Below are positions 436-10,065 of a stretch of 64,000 nucleotides of DNA, in pieces. A program made the translations under genes and the position numbers. The notes below the pieces were generated by a model. That model was given only the letters and a program-made list of their open reading frames with translations, made no database searches and was not told the DNA's origin. The stretch comes from Mantamonas sphyraenae STR306 (lineage: Eukaryota; Protista; CRuMs): positions 1-64,000 of the forward strand of contig JAPMXV010000070.1 of the NCBI GenBank assembly GCA_026936335.1, in the 5' to 3' direction. Positions within the stretch are counted from its first letter, which is position 1. Each line of letters starts with the position of its first letter.

Positions 436-3400
436 ATGGACAAAGACTACTCAAGCACTCCGAAGCAACAACACACATCCAACACCTACCCAGCGTGCGT
501 TCTGCATTTCACTCCGTTTTCAGACTGCCCGCTTCTCCCGCTTCAATGCCTCCTCCATGCCTCCGTCGCTTCCCTGCACTCCTCCCCTGCATCTCCACTT
601 TCCCATCACCACCGCTGCTGCCTTCTCCGCTGTTCTCCGATCCCCTCTCCCCTGTCACTCCCCTCTCCGTTGCCAGTTTCCCGGTCTGCCAATCTCCTCC
701 CGTTTTCCCTCTTTGCTCGTTCCAGCCTCCCTTCACCCCCGCTTCTGCCCTGACGGCGTCAATTCCGTCTTCCGCTCACCGTTTCCACCCCGCCCGTCCC
801 CTTCCCCGTCTCCCCACAGCTACGCGTACATGGTCGCTCCCATGGCTGCCCAGCCATTTCCGAACATGCTGCCCGTCTCTGGCGTACAAAACCCGTACCA
901 GCACCCACAACCACCCATCATCTGGGTGCCTGTCAACACCTACCCGCAGCAAAACCACGCATATGCTCATCAGGGCCATCCATACTACGCCTACCCTCCT
1001 CCGCCGCCTCCGCAGCCGCGACAAACTGCCCAGGTGCACTTCGCTCAGCCTCCGTCGCACCCTCCGCCTGCTCAACCCACCACAAACCACAACCGCGTCC
1101 CCAAACGCGTCAGCCCTGCCTTTGTCGGCATCACACAGACCACATCCACCACCACATCGTCGTTCTCCTCCCTCCAGACCACACGGCAGACTGGAGACAG
1201 CGACGACAACGACGCAGACCAGGACATGCACACACATGACACCGGCGACGTGGAGGACCTGATGTTCCTGAACTTTGGCCACCTTGAACCACGGTCGCCC
1301 TCCAGCAACTCAGAGTGGATAACCGCCTCATGGATAGAGGCGTACGAAGAAGACGATTTGGCAAACGACGCAACCCAGCAGCCCGTGGTCGACGAGTTGG
1401 AAACTGGGGGTTCATTCAGCTTCGCAGACACTGGCGATGCCATGGATGAGGAGTACATGCCGCAAGACGACAGCGACGACGAAACAGACGACATAGAGCA
1501 GGAGGACACGGACGATTGGCAGCCGAGACGCACACGTAGAGGCCATAGACGACGCAGAGGCAACGCCAGCCGACGTACTGGTCCACAAACGATGAAAGGC
1601 AGCGGACAGCGCAGGCGAAAAGTCACGGCTGGAAGTGGCACAGAGACAGGAACATCGAGCACACGGGCAAGGAGGGCCAGGAACGGAGACACCGACGCAC
1701 GGAAGAAAGCAGGCGTGGACAAGACGAACAAGTTGCCAGATGGTGTTGTGCGCAAAGGGTGGACAGCGGGAATCAGCGACGAGCGCAGCCGCAGCAACAA
1801 GAAGGAGCACGTGGCACTCCTGAACCACATGCACACCCTGGCCAACGAGCATCCCATCGACAACATCCTCGACCTCATGTCCCTGCAGGCGCGCGTTGTG
1901 GTCTGCCATGGCACCTTGACCATGCTGGTCCGACAGATCCTGCTCGCTCTGTACAACATTCCCCTCTCCCAGGGCGACATGGCCTTCTGTCTCATCCTTC
2001 TGGGCCATGACGTGGATCAACAGGCGTGCAGTGATGCCATCAAGAACGCTGGTCTGGCCATGGGTGTGACAAAGGCTGGGTTGAAGGTGTGCTGGCTGGA
2101 GGAGCCACACGACCACGGCGACCCCAACTACGCCCTCCTCCACCTACTCATGACAGAGATGGACACTCTCGGCGACAGAACCCATGCCACCACCTGGAAG
2201 GAGCACAAGCAGACCCAACTGTGGCTGCAGGGAGCACGACGCCCTGCTGACAACGACAGCGACCCACACTGGACACAATGCGATTACGACCACCACCTCA
2301 CCACCACCAAGGTGGAACAGTGGGAACCAGAGTCTATGCGCAATGGTTGGGCAGCACATAGAACAACCGACGAGCGTGGCAGCTGCACGGCGCGGGAGTT
2401 CCAGACGCTCATGGCACACATGAAGGCACGCGCAGCCAAGCACCCTCGCCATCAGCACACACACGAGCACCAGGCACTGCGTGAGCTGATCAACAACGGC
2501 AACCTGATGTCTCTGGTGCGACACATCATCCTGGCGCTGGGCAACGTTGGCGTGCCGCCTGTCGACCTGGCCTTCTTTGTCCGCCTCCTCAGGCCACAAC
2601 TTACCTACAAGAAGGTTCAACAGGCCATCAGCCTCAACCTCACCCGCGGTGTCACCTCCCTCTCCCTCAAGATCGCCTGGCTCGACAACCCCAAACCCAG
2701 CGACGCCACACTGCACACCCTCCTCCACACCCTCATCGACCGCATCACACCGCACATCACCACCAGACCCACCACCACCGACGCCGTCAACGCCATCGAT
2801 ATCACCGAGCTCGTTCTGCCCGAGCCCACAGAGGAGGAGAAGATGGCCGTGGAGGATGGACTGCCAGATGGCGTTGTGCGCAGTGGCTGGACGTCCTGGC
2901 GCAAGAGCGAGCGCACCCACAGCAACAAGAAGGAGCACGTGGCACTCCTGAACCACATGCACACCCTGGCCAATGAGCATCCCATCGACGACATCCCAGA
3001 TCTCATGACCCTGCAGGCGCGTGTTGTGGTCTGCCATGGCACCCTGAACACGCTTGTCCGACAGATTCAGCTCGCTCTGGGCAACATTTCCCTCTCCCAG
3101 GGAGACATGGCATTCTGCCTCACCCTTCTCGGCCGAGACATGGATCGACATGCGTGCATCGTTGCCATCACCAAGGCTGGTCTGGCCATGGGTGTGACAA
3201 AGGCCGGGTTGAAGGTATGCTGGCTGGAGGAGCCACACGACCACGGCGACCCCAACTACGCTCTCCTCAACCTGCTCATGACCGAGATGGACACTTTCGG
3301 CGACAGACCCCATCCCACCACCTGGAAGGAGCACAAACAGACCCAGCTGTGGCTGCAGGAAGCACGACGCCCTGCTGACAACGAAAGCGACCCGCACTGG

Positions 3401-4012
3401 ACACAATGCGACTACGACAACCATCTCACCACAACCAAGGTGGACAAGTGGCACCCTGAGTCAGTGCGCAATAGCTGGAGCACACACCTGCACAACGACG
3501 AACGAGGCAGCTGCACGGCACGGGAGTTCCAGACGCTGCTGGCACACATGAAGGCACGCGCAGCCAAGCACCCTCGCCATCAGCACGCACACGAGCTCCA
3601 GGAACTGCGTGAGCTGATCAACAACGGCAGCCTGAAGTCCCTGGTCCGACACATCATCCTGGCGTTGGGCAACGTTGGCGTGCCGCCTGTCGACTTGGCC
3701 TTCTTTGTCCGTCTCCTCAGACCACGTCTCACCTACCAGCAGGTTCAAGGTGCCATCAGCGCCACCCTCACCCGCGGCGTCACCTCCCTCTCCCTCAAGA
3801 TCACCTGGCTCGACAAACCCAAACCCAGCGACGCCACACTGCACACCCTCCTCCACACCCTCATCGACTGCATCACACCCCACATCACCACCCGACCCAC
3901 CACCGTCGCACTCGTCAACGCCTACCCCATCCCCTCCTTCACCCTCCCCAAGCGCAAAGACCTTTCCTCCTCCTCCTCCTCCTCCTCCTCCAAACGCCAT
4001 CGCCTCGAATGA
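436..4012 (+). CDS. Subtelomeric repeat-module protein, copy 1 (exons 436-494, 820-4012; ~1083 aa; modules ABAB)
   Basis: ATG in CACCATCATG context. Phase-2 intron 495-819 (GTGCGT...CTGAC...CCCCACAG) joins MDKDYSS...TYPA in frame to YAYMVAPM of the 1151-aa ORF. The same intron is conserved in copy 2. Ends [21 protein letters not shown]. Confidence 0.85.
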
Positions 4013-4046
4013 ACCACCCTTTCATTCTCACACCCTCCTCACTCAT

Positions 4047-4210
4047 TCACCTCCCCATCCACTCCACCACACTCTCCATCACCTCATCCGGGAGTGTCAC
4101 CCACCCTTCCGACCCTCCCTTCTCCACATACGCCTCCATCCCACCACACCCAAACATCGCCTCCCCCTCTTCCCCATTCATCACCAACCCCGTCTCTTTA
4201 GCCTCGTCCC
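4047..4210 (-). pseudogene. Relic 3' end of an ankyrin-type gene with F-box/SOCS-like tail, paralogous to 17186-18142
   Basis: LVMNGEEGEAMFGCGGMEAYVEKGGSEGWVTLPDEVMESVVEW vs LVMNAEEREVMFECGGMEGYVEERGWEGWVTLPDEVMERVVGW at ~17200-17335; nucleotide similarity is also visible. Confidence 0.8.
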
Positions 4211-4314
4211 CCTGTGCACCCCACCCATCATTCAACCACAGTATCGCCAACACCCACAACACCCTCCACTAGTCCAACACAATCCACATACACTCCAGCA
4301 CCATCACCACCATC

Positions 4315-7300
4315 ATGGACAAGGACCACTTAAGCAATCCGAAGCAACAACACACATCCAACACCTACCCAGCGTGCGTTCTGCCTTCCACTCCGTTTTC
4401 TGGCTGCCCGCTGCTCCCGCTTCCATGCCTCCTCCATGCCTCTGTCGCTCCTGCACTCCTCCCCCGCATCTCCACTTCCCCATCACCACCGCCGCTGCCA
4501 CCTCCGCTCTTCTCCGAACCCCTCTCCCCTGTCACTGCCCTCCCCGTTGCCAGTTTCCCGGTCTGCCAATCTCCTCCGTTTCCCCTCTCTGCTCGTTCCA
4601 GCCTCCCTTCGTCCCGCTTCTGCTCTAACGGCGTCCATGCCGTCTTCCGCTCACCGTTCCTACCCCACCATGCCCCTGCCCGTCTCCCCACAGCTACGCG
4701 TACATGGTCCCTCCCATGGCTGCCCAGCCGTTTCCGAACATGCTGCCCGTTTCTGGCGTACAAAACCCGTACCAGCATCCACAACCACCCATCATCTGGG
4801 TCCCTGTCAACACCTACTCTCAGCAGCACCACGCATATGCTCATCAGGGCCACCCATACTACGCCTACCCTCCTCCGCCGCCTCCTCAGCCGCGACAAAC
4901 CGCCCAGATGCACTTCGCTCAGGCTCCGTTCCACCCTCCGTCCGCTCAACCCGCCACAAACCACAACCGCGTTCCCAAACGTGTCAGTCCTGCCTTTGTC
5001 GATATCACACGGACCACATCCACCACCACATCGTCGTCCTCCTCCCACCAGGCCACACGGCGGACTGGAGACAGCGACGACGACGACGCAGACCAGGACA
5101 CACACACACATGACACCAGCGACGTGGAAGACCTGATGTTCCTGAACTTTGGCCACCGTGAACCACGGTCAACCTCCAGCAACTCAGAGTGGATGACCAG
5201 CTCAGGGATGGAGGCGTACGAAGAAGACGGCGAGGCAAACGACGCAACCCAGCAGCACGTGGACGACGAGGTGGAAACTCAGGGCACACTCAGCTTTGCG
5301 TACACTGATGATGCCATGGATGAGGAGTACATGCCGCAAGGTGACAGCGACGACGACACAGACGACATTGAACAAGAGGACGCGGACGAATGGCAGCCGA
5401 GACGCACAAGAGGAGGCCACACGCGACGATGCAGGTGCCACACCAGCCGACGCACCGGTCCACAAAAGATGAAAGGCAGCGGACAGGGCTGGCGCAGGGT
5501 CACGGCTGGCAGTGGCACAGAGACAGGAACGTCGAGCTCACGGGCAAGGAGGGCCAAGAACGGAGACACCGGCGCACGGAAGAAAGCAGGCGTGAAGTTG
5601 CCAGATGGCGTTGTGCGCAAAGGATGGTCGCGGAACTGGCGCAGTGACGAGCGCAGCCACAGAAACAAGAAGGAACACACGGTACTGCTGAAACACATGC
5701 ACACTCTGGCCAGCGAGTATCCCATAGACAACGTCCCCGACCTCATGACCCTGCAGGCGCGTGTTGTGGTCTGCCATGGCACCCTGTTGACGCTGGTCCG
5801 ACAGATTCAGCTCTCTCTGGGCAACATTCCCCTCTCCCAGGGCGACATGGCCTTCTGCCTCACCCTTCTCGGCCGTGACATGGATCAACGTGTGTGCGGT
5901 GTAACCATCCTCAACGCTGGTCTGGCCACGGGTGTGACAAAGTCTGGGTTGAAGGTGTGTTGGTTGGAGGAGCCACACAACCATGGCGACCCCAACTACG
6001 CCCTCCTCCACCTTCTCATGACAGAGATGGACAGTCTCGGCAGCAGGACCTATCCCACCACCTGGAAGGAGCACAAGGAGACCCAGCTGTGGCTGCAGAA
6101 AGCACGACGCCCTGCTGACAACGACAGCGACCCACACTGGACACAATGCGACTACGACCACCATCTCACCACTACCGAGTTGGACAAGTGGCATCCCGAG
6201 CCTGCGCGAAGTGGCTGGGCATCGCACACTACCAACGACGAACGTGGCAGCTGCACGGCGCGGGAGTTCCAGACCCTGCTGGCACACATGAAGGCACGCG
6301 CAGCCAAGCACCCTCGCCATCAGCACACACACGAGCACCAGGCACTGCGTGAGCTGATCAACAACGGCGACCTGCTCTCCCTGCTGCGACACATCATCCT
6401 GGCGCTGGGCAACGTTGGCATGCCCCCTGTCGACTTGGCCTTCTTTGTCCGCCTCCTGAGGCCACACATCACCTACAAGCAGGTGAAAAGCGCCATCAGT
6501 TCCACCCTCAGCCGCGTTGTCACCTCCCTCTCCCTCAAGATCGCCTGGCTCGACAACCCCAAACCCAGCGACGCCACACTGCACACCCTCCTCCACACCC
6601 TCATCGACCGCATCACACCCCACATCTCCACCCGCCCCACCACCATCGATGCCGTGATCACCCTCGACATCCCCGAGATTATTCTCCCTGAGCCCACAGG
6701 GGAGGAGATGATGGCCGAGGAGGATGGACCGCCAGATGGAGTTGTGCGCAGTGGCTGGACATTCTGGCGCAAGAGCGAGCGCATGCACAGCAACAAGAAG
6801 GAGCACACGGCACTGCTGAACCACATGCACACCCTGGTCAACGAGCATCCCATCGACGACATCTCCGACCACATGAACCTGCAGGCGCGTGTTGTGGTCT
6901 GCCATGGCACCGTGACCACACTCGTCCGACAGATTCAGCTCGCTCTGGGCAACATTCCCCTCTCCCAGGGCGACATGGCCTTCTGCCTCACCCTTCTCGG
7001 CCGTGACATGGATCAACATGCGTGCAGCGTTGCCATTCTCAACGCTGGTCTGGCCATGGGTGTGACAAAGGCTGGGTTGAAGGTGTGCTGGCTGCTGAGG
7101 AGCCACACGACCACGGCGACCCCAACTACGCCCTCCTCCACCTGCTCATGACAGAGATGGACCGTCTCGGCGACAGGCCCCATCCCACCACCTGGAAGCA
7201 GCACGAGCAGACCCAGCTGTCGCTGCAGAAAGCACGACGCCCTGCTGACAACGACAGCGACCCACACTGGACTCAATGCGACTACGACCATCACCTTGCC

Positions 7301-7894
7301 ACCACCACGGTGGAAAAGTGGGAACCAGAGTCTGTGCGCAGTGGCTGGAGCAAGTCCCGGGGTGACGCGACCGACGAGCGTGGCAGCTGCACGGCGCGGG
7401 AGTTCCAGACGCTGCTGGCACACATGAAGGCACGCGCAGCCAAGTACCCACGCCATCAGCATGCACACGAGCACCATGCACTGCATGAGCTGATCCGCAA
7501 CGGCAGCAAGCTGTCCCTGGTGCGACACACCATCCTTGCGCTGGGCAATGTTGGCGTGCCGCCTGTCGACCTGGCCGTCTTTGTACGCCTCCTCAGGCCA
7601 CGCCTCACCTACCAGCAGGTTTCCAACGCCATCAGCAACACCCTCAATCGTGGTGTTACCTCTCTCTCCCTCAAGATCGCCTGGCTCGACAAACCCACCG
7701 ACGCCACACTGCACACCCTCCTCCACACCCTCATCGACCGCATCACACCCCACATCACCACACGCCCTACCACAGTCGCACTGGTCAACGCCTACCCCAT
7801 CCCCTCCTTCACCCTCCCCAAGCGCAAAGACCCTTCCTCTTCCTCCTCCTCCTCCTCCTCCCCCTCTTCCTCCAAACGCCAACGCCTGGAGTAA
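4315..7894 (+). pseudogene. Subtelomeric repeat-module protein, copy 2 (exons 4315-4373, 4694-7894; ABAB) with a 2-nt frameshift at 7095-7096
   Basis: Intron 4374-4693 matches copy 1. The family sequence TGCTGGCTG-GAGGAGCC reads TGCTGGCTG-CT-GAGGAGCC here, splitting the gene into ORFs 4704-7151 and 7022-7894. It could be an intact gene with an assembly error. Confidence 0.75.
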
Positions 7895-8244
7895 CACTCA
7901 CCCCTATCACACGCACCTTTGTCCTCAGTGGCGTGTGCGAAATTCCACTCACCCTCACCTGCCCAACCAACGTTTCCAACAACAACTTCTCACCATTCAC
8001 AGCAACACCAGTTCCCCCTTCCGCTCATACCATCCCTACCCCGTGTAAGTAACCTCCCATGTTTCGCATCTCCGGTTCCGTCAACCGTCCTTTGCACACA
8101 CTTGTCGCTCCATCCGCCTTCAAAGGTCCCTCTTTGCGCCCAACCGTCCACGCTATGCTGACCATCCTCCAACCTTCACGCACATGCATCATTACACGCC
8201 CACCCCAACCTATCACCTATCGTGTTCCACTCAGTTTCGGTCCA

Positions 8245-10065
8245 ATGAACCTGCAACGAGGCTACATTCCTCAGCAATATCTTTCCCCACCCGGCTACGC
8301 ATATCCACAGAACTCCATGCAGTCCTTTGTGTGGGTTCCTGTTCTGTTACACTATCCGAACCGCCTTCACACATCCAACACCACTCCTCCCCCGCCGCCT
8401 CCGCCTGCTGCGCCCAGCAACGTATCTAGCCATTCCTCCGAACACGAGCCTGGAACGCTTTATGTGGACACCACACAACCCGCAAGGCGCTTCTACCGCT
8501 TCCACGACACCGATTGGATGACTCAGGATGACGTGCTCCGGTATGTCGAGGCGAGCGACGAGGCCTGGGCTCAGCCCGTCTCGCAAGACCACACAGCCAC
8601 GACCACAACCTCAACAACCACCATAGATGGGGATTCCGTACCTGGGGACAATAGCGATGACGACACAGACGACATGGAGCAGGAGAACATGGATGAACAG
8701 TCGCTGCCCAAACGAATCAGTCGCCGCACACGACAGAGGGGCCGCAGCGGATGTCGCTCTGGGACACAAAGCAGCACATGGAATGGAAAGCACGGGCACA
8801 GGGTCACGGCTGGCAGTGGCACCGAGACAGGAACGTCGAGCACACGGGCAAGGAGGGCCAAGAACGGAAACAACGGTGCAAGGAAGAAACCAGGCGTCAA
8901 CAAGAAGAACAAGTTGCCAGATGGCGTTGTGCGCAAAGGGTGGACATGGGGGTACAGTGACGAGCGCAGCCACAGAAACAAGAAGGAGCACACGGCACTG
9001 CTGAACCACATGCACACCCTGGCCAACGAGCATCCCATCGACAACATCCCCGACCTCATGACCCTGCAGGCGCGTGTTATGGTCTGCCATGGCACTACGA
9101 CCACGCTTGTCCGACAGATTCTGCTCGCTCTGGGCAACATTCCCCTTTCCCAGGGCGACATGGCCCTCTGTCTCACCCTCCTCGGCCGTGCAATGGATCA
9201 ACAGGCGTGCAGCAGTGTCATCCGCGACGCTGGTCTGGCCATTGGTGTGACAAAGGCTGGGTTGAAGGTGTGCTGGCTGGAGGAGCCACACGACCACGGC
9301 GACCCCAACTACGCCCTCCTCCACCTCCTCATGACAGAGATGGACACTCTCGGCAGCAGAGTCCATCCCACCACCTGGAAGGAGCACAAGCAGACCCAGC
9401 TGAGGCTGCAGGAAGCACGACGCCCTGCTGACAACGACAGCGACCCATACTGGACACAATATGACTACGACCACCACCTCAACACCACCGAGGTGGAAAA
9501 GTGGCACCCTGAGACTGTGCGCAGTGGCTGGGCATCGCACTCTCCCAGCGACGAACGTGGCAGCTGCACGGCGCGGGAGTTCCAGACGCTGCTGGCACAC
9601 ATGAAGGCACGCGCAGCCAAGCACCCTCGCCATATCCACACACACGAGCACCATGCACTGCGTGAGCTGATCAACAACGGCAGCCTGCAGTCCCTGCTGC
9701 GACACATCATCCTGGCGCTGGGCAACGTTGGCGTGCCGCCTGTCGACCTGGCCTTCTTTGTCCGCCTCCTCAGGCCACGTCTCACCTACCAACAGGTGCA
9801 AAGTGCCATCGGCCTCATCCTCACCCGCGGCGTCACCTCCCTCTCCCTCAAGATCGCCTGGCTCGACAAACCCCAACCCAGCGACGCCACGCTGCACACC
9901 CTCCTGCACACCCTCATCGACCGCATCACACCCCACATCACCACCCGTCCCACTACCACCGCACTCGTCAACGTCTACCCCATCCCCTCCTTCACCCTCC
10001 CCAAGCGCAAACACCCTTCCTCCTCCTCCTCCTCCTCCTCCTCCAAACGCCAACGCCTTGAATGA
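8245..10065 (+). CDS. Subtelomeric repeat-module protein, copy 3 (single AB unit, diverged N-terminus; ~606 aa from first ATG)
   Basis: Part of ORF 8059-10065. Upstream phase-2 intron 8045-8234 (GTAAGT...GCTGAC...ACTCAG) lies at the position equivalent to copies 1 and 2. Shares WVPV, W(M/I)T, DDxDDxEQE, VTAGSGTETGTSS and the KRQRLE tail. Confidence 0.8.
   Translation: MNLQRGYIPQQYLSPPGYAYPQNSMQSFVWVPVLLHYPNRLHTSNTTPPPPPPPAAPSNVSSHSSEHEPGTLYVDTTQPARRFYRFHDTDWMTQDDVLRYVEASDEAWAQPVSQDHTATTTTSTTTIDGDSVPGDNSDDDTDDMEQENMDEQSLPKRISRRTRQRGRSGCRSGTQSSTWNGKHGHRVTAGSGTETGTSSTRARRAKNGNNGARKKPGVNKKNKLPDGVVRKGWTWGYSDERSHRNKKEHTALLNHMHTLANEHPIDNIPDLMTLQARVMVCHGTTTTLVRQILLALGNIPLSQGDMALCLTLLGRAMDQQACSSVIRDAGLAIGVTKAGLKVCWLEEPHDHGDPNYALLHLLMTEMDTLGSRVHPTTWKEHKQTQLRLQEARRPADNDSDPYWTQYDYDHHLNTTEVEKWHPETVRSGWASHSPSDERGSCTAREFQTLLAHMKARAAKHPRHIHTHEHHALRELINNGSLQSLLRHIILALGNVGVPPVDLAFFVRLLRPRLTYQQVQSAIGLILTRGVTSLSLKIAWLDKPQPSDATLHTLLHTLIDRITPHITTRPTTTALVNVYPIPSFTLPKRKHPSSSSSSSSSKRQRLE

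Follow-up and report, generated by a model that had tools for sequence, protein, structure and literature searches.

A subtelomeric family of orphan tandem-module proteins in Mantamonas sphyraenae with hypervariable patches and a possible helix-turn-helix-like core

Gene copies at the left end of the contig

The DNA considered here, called the window throughout, comprises the first 64,000 nucleotides of contig JAPMXV010000070.1 (forward strand; assembly GCA_026936335.1) of the protist Mantamonas sphyraenae STR306, and its left end carries three copies of a gene family encoding tandem protein modules of about 150 amino acids, of two types termed A and B. A telomere repeat, (CCCTAA)n, can be read directly at positions 1-155, without strand assignment, and marks the left end of the contig; TTAGGG telomeres have been reported for the assembly (PMC10492846). 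Copy 1 is a putative coding sequence of ~1,060 amino acids on the plus strand (830-4012), running from an in-frame methionine (MVAPMAAQ...) to a stop codon within an open reading frame (ORF) at 557-4012. The methionine at 830 is homologous to the start methionine of copy 2, and the gene thus placed starts ~0.7 kb from the telomere. Copy 2 (4704-7894, plus strand) has the module order ABAB and is frameshifted within its third module near 7085-7151; its two ORFs, 4704-7151 and 7022-7894, are in different frames, overlap at 7022-7151 and jointly restore the ABAB order. Copy 3 (8059-10065, plus strand), located from the ORF list and the module map, is shorter and holds a single AB unit.

The protein of copy 1, all of whose features lie on the plus strand, begins with a low-complexity Pro/Gln/Tyr-rich terminus (833-1132), in which these three residues make up 42-46% of the sequence. 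This is followed by a Ser/Thr-rich and then an acidic, Asp/Glu-rich region (1133-1522; Asp plus Glu up to 20-32% per block of 50 residues) and by basic Arg/Lys tracts (1523-1732; Lys plus Arg up to 20-28% per block) with runs of three to four arginines and an ARKK motif, resembling nuclear localisation signals (NLS). The C-terminal tail (3947-4009), with KRK, poly-Ser and KRHR, resembles a bipartite NLS, as judged by pattern only. The initial annotation of this DNA had described a Pro/Gln/Tyr-rich N-terminus, an acidic region and NLS-like tracts, and the composition by blocks of 50 residues bears this out.

Between these regions, segmentation with a hidden Markov model (HMM) places four modules in the order A-B-A-B, which would be all-alpha according to the predictions discussed below: A1 (149 residues, 1733-2179), B1 (150 residues, 2321-2770), A2 (2861-3307) and B2 (3449-3898). 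B1 holds the core at 2500-2690 to which the initial annotation had drawn attention. Translation of window positions 2498-2692 (plus strand) reproduces the B core quoted there exactly, reading SLVRHIILAL, GNVGV, PPVDLAFFVRLLRP, QLTYKKVQQAISLNLTRG and then VTSLSLKIAWLD; the quoted A core is likewise present, and the variant VSNAISNTLN occurs in copy 2, in its final B module. The homology proposed between the two module types is confirmed: in an alignment of A1 with B1 over 146 residues, 36% are identical (E 1e-18), which makes the two types old paralogous versions of a single domain. The A-to-B linkers (2180-2320, 47 residues, and 3308-3448) are themselves nearly invariant across 108 AB units. 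They are rich in Trp, His, Cys and Asp, with motifs such as HWTQCDYDHH, and may form a structured or metal-binding element instead of a passive spacer.

By sequence comparison the family is without detectable relatives in the databases searched, and the module is described here as an orphan domain. Neither the whole protein nor any single module had a significant match in Pfam, NCBIfam or PHROGs. No relative was found in a word-indexed search of 5.8 billion proteins, and a profile search of 1.84 billion protein representatives returned 0 matches. In a profile search of PDB sequences nothing was significant, the best hit being a designed coiled coil (E 0.28), and scans of metagenome and viral contigs likewise revealed no relative. 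A transposon origin was considered and rejected, with no reverse transcriptase, transposase or nuclease domain in the protein.

Genome-wide copies and their hypervariable positions

The assembly (25,061,354 bases in 78 contigs, ~59% GC) was scanned with two queries. The B-module query yielded 735 candidates, of which 150 were scored, and nearly all of these lie 2-8 kb from contig ends and face inward. The N-terminal region, which occurs once per gene, gave 202 candidates (150 scored), again close to contig ends and inward-reading, and this count of a once-per-gene region indicates a family of ~200 genes. The clustering of nearly all 150 scored copies at contig ends identifies a subtelomeric multigene family, which by our estimate occupies ~3% of the genome (~200 copies, each ~3.5 kb long, out of 25 Mb). 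Among 56 reading frames the module order is nearly always ABAB, and now and then ABABAB or longer. By our own count, about three quarters of the scored copies retain open frames of at least 1,000 amino acids, and about a quarter have been shortened or have lost their frame, as copy 2 of the window has through its frameshift.

In the Mantamonas sphyraenae genome paper, repeats were masked before gene prediction and were mostly left unclassified (PMC10492846), and this masking is probably why the family is absent from protein databases and annotation. In the collection of papers searched, no link was found between Mantamonas and a subtelomeric family.

The variation within the family is confined to a few places. 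Column entropy computed over 110 A and 110 B modules shows that the high-entropy columns form three patches: HV1, the loop that follows an invariant Gly-Trp pair; HV2, the first residues of the predicted first core helix (H1); and HV3, on the predicted third core helix (H3). In B1 these correspond to residues 11-16 (2351-2368; entropy 1.9-3.1 bits), to the first two residues of H1 (2504-2509; 3.0 bits at residue 63) and to positions within residues 93-108 (2597-2644), where codons 93, 97, 98, 100, 101, 104 and 105 are variable. Positions 97, 100, 101, 104 and 105 of HV3 vary in both A and B; A modules have the additional site 94, B modules the additional sites 93 and 98. Residues 99, 102, 103 and 107 are conserved and hydrophobic (V99, A102, I103 and L107 in B1, predicted to be buried). 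In both module types the entropy of HV3 has a periodicity of 90 degrees, which points to a single face of the helix. The earlier proposal that the variable residues sit on the presumed recognition helix is thus upheld, in that HV3 maps to the exposed face of the predicted third helix at the same sites in A and B.

Nearly every module carries its own set of residues on this face, and of 108 modules of each type, 92 in A and 98 in B have distinct HV3 combinations. The three patches vary nearly independently, being no more than mildly coupled inside a module (z 3-4). Covariation between the variable patches of A and B within a unit, sought as a sign of an interface, was not seen (z 1.1). The family consists of tandem modules in which residues at fixed positions differ from module to module, an arrangement shared with TALE proteins, C2H2 zinc-finger arrays (e.g. 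KRAB-ZFPs), PPR and PUF proteins, where a near-invariant scaffold likewise varies at a few fixed positions on one face and a large set of paralogues diversifies rapidly. The Mantamonas modules differ from these in length (150 residues as opposed to 30-35), in being usually four per protein and in belonging to another fold class.

The selective regime also separates scaffold and patches. The ratio of nonsynonymous to synonymous diversity (piN/piS) is 0.39-0.40 in the scaffold and ~1.0 at the variable columns, where piN (0.36) is two to three times the scaffold piS (0.13-0.17). This diversity fits diversifying selection or local hypermutation, with the proviso that the columns had been preselected as variable; a ratio of about 1, and not above 1, at columns picked for their variability weighs against reading them as a selected specificity surface. 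Synonymous diversity is likewise raised at the hypervariable codons (piS 0.36-0.37, as against 0.13-0.17 in the scaffold), which hints at multi-nucleotide replacement or local hypermutation, and not at single-substitution selection alone.

These figures also bear on whether the reading frames could be functionless remnants of decaying subtelomeric repeats. Given the masking before gene calling, the family would count as unclassified repeat (PMC10492846), and the truncated or frameshifted quarter of the copies would be expected of decay. The long frames of most copies, the scaffold ratio of 0.4 and the restriction of variation to a few periodic positions common to A and B all argue the other way, and make decay very improbable. 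On the preferred explanation, the scaffold is kept constant by purifying selection together with exchange between chromosome ends.

Copies at nearly every chromosome end, with subtelomeric exchange as the probable source of their diversity, are also a feature of telomere-adjacent families of nuclear proteins (Candida albicans TLO/Med2 and human subtelomeric DUX4) and of the subtelomeric contingency families var, VSG and MSG. The Mantamonas protein is unrelated to all of these and has neither a signal peptide nor a membrane segment. For this reason it is not taken to be a surface antigen, a possibility that was considered and rejected on the sequence as read. Moreover, its diversity is placed in point-like patches and not across whole domains.

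Several observations concern the arrangement of copies along the chromosomes. The right end of contig C22 (227600-232200) corresponds to window positions 1100-5600: the family copies there have an N-terminal region 100% identical to that of window copy 1, and the second gene scores the same as window copy 2. Either the two subtelomeres were duplicated or exchanged very recently, or the ends are allelic haplotigs, the organism being diploid. On the longest contig, C29 (751,365 bases), an internal convergent pair of family arrays lies at 74000-103700, ~76-103 kb from the contig end, with open frames up to 3,224 amino acids and more modules than usual (e.g. aBABABAABAB); it could have arisen by inverted duplication or from two chromosome ends that became trapped, or it may stem from a join made during assembly. 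In the window itself, the neighbours of the family at 10311-63949 are ordinary eukaryotic genes, mostly intronless, and encode an NBR1-like protein (PB1 and N_BRCA1_IG), an EF-hand/PX protein, a Furry-like protein with an RGS domain, RING plus B-box, JmjC/cupin and TBC plus TLDc proteins, and a 2,473-residue ankyrin-repeat protein. For one of these neighbours the exact product was looked up, and no matching record was found.

Predicted fold of the modules

The structure of B1 was modelled with AlphaFold2 (AF2) from an alignment of 111 modules (56 B and 55 A). The resulting model has a predicted local distance difference test score (pLDDT) of 59 and seven helices, at residues 24-40, 47-59, 62-73, 80-90, 96-108, 113-119 and 128-147. 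A second model, of a whole AB unit from a 108-unit alignment, has a pLDDT of 45 and shows the same helix pattern in both modules. Its predicted template modelling score of 0.26 gives no confident arrangement of one module relative to the other, and the interaction prediction score from aligned errors (ipSAE) of 0.00 for an ESMFold2 complex of A plus linker with B counts neither for nor against packing. Three helices in the middle of the module are of particular interest: H1 (62-73; window 2504-2539), H2 (80-90; 2558-2590), which is near-invariant by column entropy, and H3, the helix that carries HV3. HV1 falls in a loop with pLDDT below 50. Downstream of H3 lies a further conserved segment, GVTSLSLKIAWLD (2648-2686), whose hydropathy shows, in either module type, a beta-like 150-degree periodicity and which is a candidate beta-hairpin wing.

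The initial annotation had compared this core with a forkhead or winged-helix fold. Searching by structure, which it had proposed as a check together with AlphaFold, lends some support to the second part of that comparison, since a three-helix core is indeed predicted, though at low confidence. In exhaustive VIA searches with the B model, ~30 of the top 50 matches were winged-helix domains, aligned on residues ~59-125. They included CRP (2.9 Å over 75 residues), Fur (2.0 Å over 57), MCM winged-helix domains, SarA/SarR/SarX, NsrR, GntR, PadR, MecI, ORC/Cdc6, the cullin WHB domain, the winged-helix domains (WHDs) of Apaf-1, CED-4 and ZAR1, and Stn1. With the AB model, ~40 of the top 50 were winged helix-turn-helix (wHTH) or helix-turn-helix (HTH) DNA-binding domains, aligned on A residues 44-111 or B residues 59-122; ArgR/AhrC superposed at 1.4-1.6 Å over 46-49 residues with 22-25% identity, and Hop2, a MarR-like protein, Crp/Fnr, Fur/Zur/PerR, MecI/BlaI, sigma-54 RpoN, histone H1, Lrp/AsnC, TFIIE, RPC62, Stn1, MCM and ORC were also among the matches. 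In both models H3 aligns with the recognition helix of the wHTH structures. Taken together, H1-H2-H3 superpose on wHTH domains with a root-mean-square deviation (rmsd) of 1.4-3 Å over 44-75 residues, at Z scores of just 4-5.8 and a pLDDT of 45-72 in the core region across the two models. These predictions point weakly but consistently to a generic HTH- or winged-helix-like three-helix core, towards which we lean by a little.

A number of results count against this fold assignment. The models themselves are of low confidence (pLDDT 59 for B and 45 for AB, and below 50 with ESMFold2). The best Foldseek match in the PDB has an E value of only 0.46, searches of the ESM Atlas by features and by shape gave no match, and the VIA Z scores (best 5.2 and 5.8) are below the level that the tool calls common for helical models. 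The sequence searches (Pfam, NCBIfam, PHROGs and PDB profiles) matched no HTH or winged-helix family. Furthermore, neither AF2 model contains strands after H3, where a beta wing would be placed, and a low-confidence short helix is predicted there instead. Finally, 45% of B modules have Gly or Pro at position 101, in the middle of H3, and helix 3 may for that reason be shorter, kinked, or start later than modelled.

The same weaknesses would be expected if the modules had a new helical fold unrelated to HTH, with low-confidence models of an orphan drifting to a common three-helix arrangement. The alignments behind the models hold only paralogues, 80-85% identical within each module type, which also suits such an explanation. 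It accounts less well for a class of matches that is coherent over two runs and both modules, with an rmsd of 1.4-2.5 Å over 44-57 residues, or for helix boundaries that are reproducible between AF2 runs. On balance a new fold is considered unlikely, and an HTH/winged-helix-like core made of helices ~62-73, 80-90 and 96-108 together with the conserved beta-like segment would be the most probable arrangement.

The forkhead half of the original comparison did not survive. It had been made by eye, from the hydrophobic spacing and from an AIS..L / W.LD motif that recalls forkhead H3 and strand S3, and at sequence level the likeness is not above chance. The forkhead profile PF00250 matched 0 of 111 modules even at E<=10, and it did not match the whole protein. 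A six-frame search of the genome with PF00250 was also negative, with the control genomes of the same search equally silent, so that a genome-wide lack of the family is not shown. No FOX chain was among the top matches listed by Foldseek or by the two VIA searches, all run with low-confidence models. The positions that correspond to the conserved base-contacting Asn and His of forkhead helix 3 are hypervariable here, and what is conserved on the helix is hydrophobic (V99, A102, I103 and L107). The predicted H2-H3 connection is some five residues shorter than in forkhead domains. Because PF00250 is unmatched, no FOX structure is listed and the Asn/His-equivalent sites vary, membership in the forkhead family was rejected, being effectively refuted at sequence level, and even a divergent FOX member is scarcely credible.

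The suggested alternatives of a linker histone H15 or HARE-HTH domain fared no better, as no such Pfam family appeared even among the weak matches of the 111 modules, and the histone H1 globular domain was only a weak fold match (Z 4.9, 2.1 Å over 51 residues). The modules as modelled share the general H1-H2-H3 order and a conserved segment after H3 with forkhead and H15 domains; they differ in matching neither PF00250 nor any other winged-helix family at E<=10.

Structural parallels are also found in winged-helix regulators of bacteria and archaea such as the ArgR/AhrC N-domain, MarR/SarA, Fur, CRP and MecI/BlaI, on which the predicted core superposes at 1.4-3 Å over 46-75 residues and whose recognition helix is equivalent to the helix bearing the variable residues in Mantamonas. 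A module of ~150 residues with extra N- and C-terminal helices is reminiscent of MarR/SarA proteins, and the tandem arrangement of two paralogous halves has a counterpart in SarA homologues with two domains. The Mantamonas protein departs from these regulators in having no sequence relation to them, in being a eukaryotic, nuclear-type protein with four or more modules per chain, and in combining models without a wing, a hypervariable contact face and ~200 paralogues.

Candidate ligands and biological meaning

The two module types differ in charge. B modules are strongly basic, with a mean isoelectric point (pI) of 10.5 and a net charge of +7.6 (+4.3 in the core), and A modules have a mean pI of 6.3, their mild acidity coming mainly from the C-terminal helix. 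Of the residues found at HV3 in B modules, 82% are polar and 65% are Arg, Lys, Asn, Gln or His. Glu is almost absent from HV3 in either type (3 of 770 B residues, 1 of 660 A residues), and the palette of B HV3, with Glu nearly excluded, is what a polyanion-facing surface would resemble. The NLS-like tracts suggest a nuclear location, the basic B core and the near-exclusion of Glu would be indirect signs of nucleic-acid binding through helix 3, and any code relating residues to bases would be conjectural.

Other properties would suit a protein ligand no less than DNA. The A modules have a mildly acidic pI, and hydrophobic residues account for 33% of their HV3. For many winged-helix domains the ligand is a protein and not nucleic acid, and the fold matches include WHDs of the protein-binding type (Apaf-1, CED-4, ZAR1 and other NLR-type proteins, and Dark) besides the cullin WHB domain and Stn1. 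The modules could thus be variable protein-recognition domains, winged-helix-like or not, that are diversified by subtelomeric recombination and serve as an intracellular repertoire for self/non-self recognition, immunity or mating-type-like functions. Near-unique combinations of hypervariable residues on a fixed scaffold would be in keeping with this, since receptors in immunity and incompatibility systems have hypervariable repeat domains with a similar pattern. Against protein recognition stand the strong basicity of the B modules, the near-exclusion of Glu from HV3, domain scans that revealed no NTPase, death-fold, TIR or other signalling domain, and the remainder of the protein, which resembles a nuclear protein of transcription-factor type. 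Protein recognition is therefore regarded as somewhat unlikely.

The explanation preferred here is that the protein serves recognition in the nucleus and that its variable patches are the surface which confers specificity. On a constant scaffold, nearly every module differs at six to seven residues on the predicted exposed face of helix 3, at the first residues of helix 1 and in the loop after Gly-Trp, and the basic B modules would make nucleic acid the most likely ligand, read via helix 3. As a whole, an HTH/winged-helix-like core with variable residues on its third helix and with nucleic-acid binding included is proposed tentatively, its chance falling somewhat short of even. Each protein would then carry four differently specified readers, giving ~800 per genome. 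The boldest form of the proposal, which takes up the re-programmable code suggested in the initial annotation, is that these are previously unseen modular and re-programmable nucleic-acid readers, built from tandem winged-helix-like modules in which ~6 helix-3 residues each set the target; as a complete statement this appears distinctly unlikely.

If it were true, the family would offer a new natural scaffold for programmable recognition, with specificity residing in a few helix-3 residues, and Mantamonas, a free-living protist, would be unusual in keeping at its telomeres hundreds of nuclear proteins, each with its own specificity. A deep-branching eukaryote would then hold a telomeric repertoire of roughly 800 different modules, which could serve, for example, genome defence or gene regulation. 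Even without DNA binding, the contrast between a fixed scaffold and hypervariable patches is among the sharpest known to us in intracellular proteins, and the family bears on how chromosome ends are organised in CRuMs genomes.

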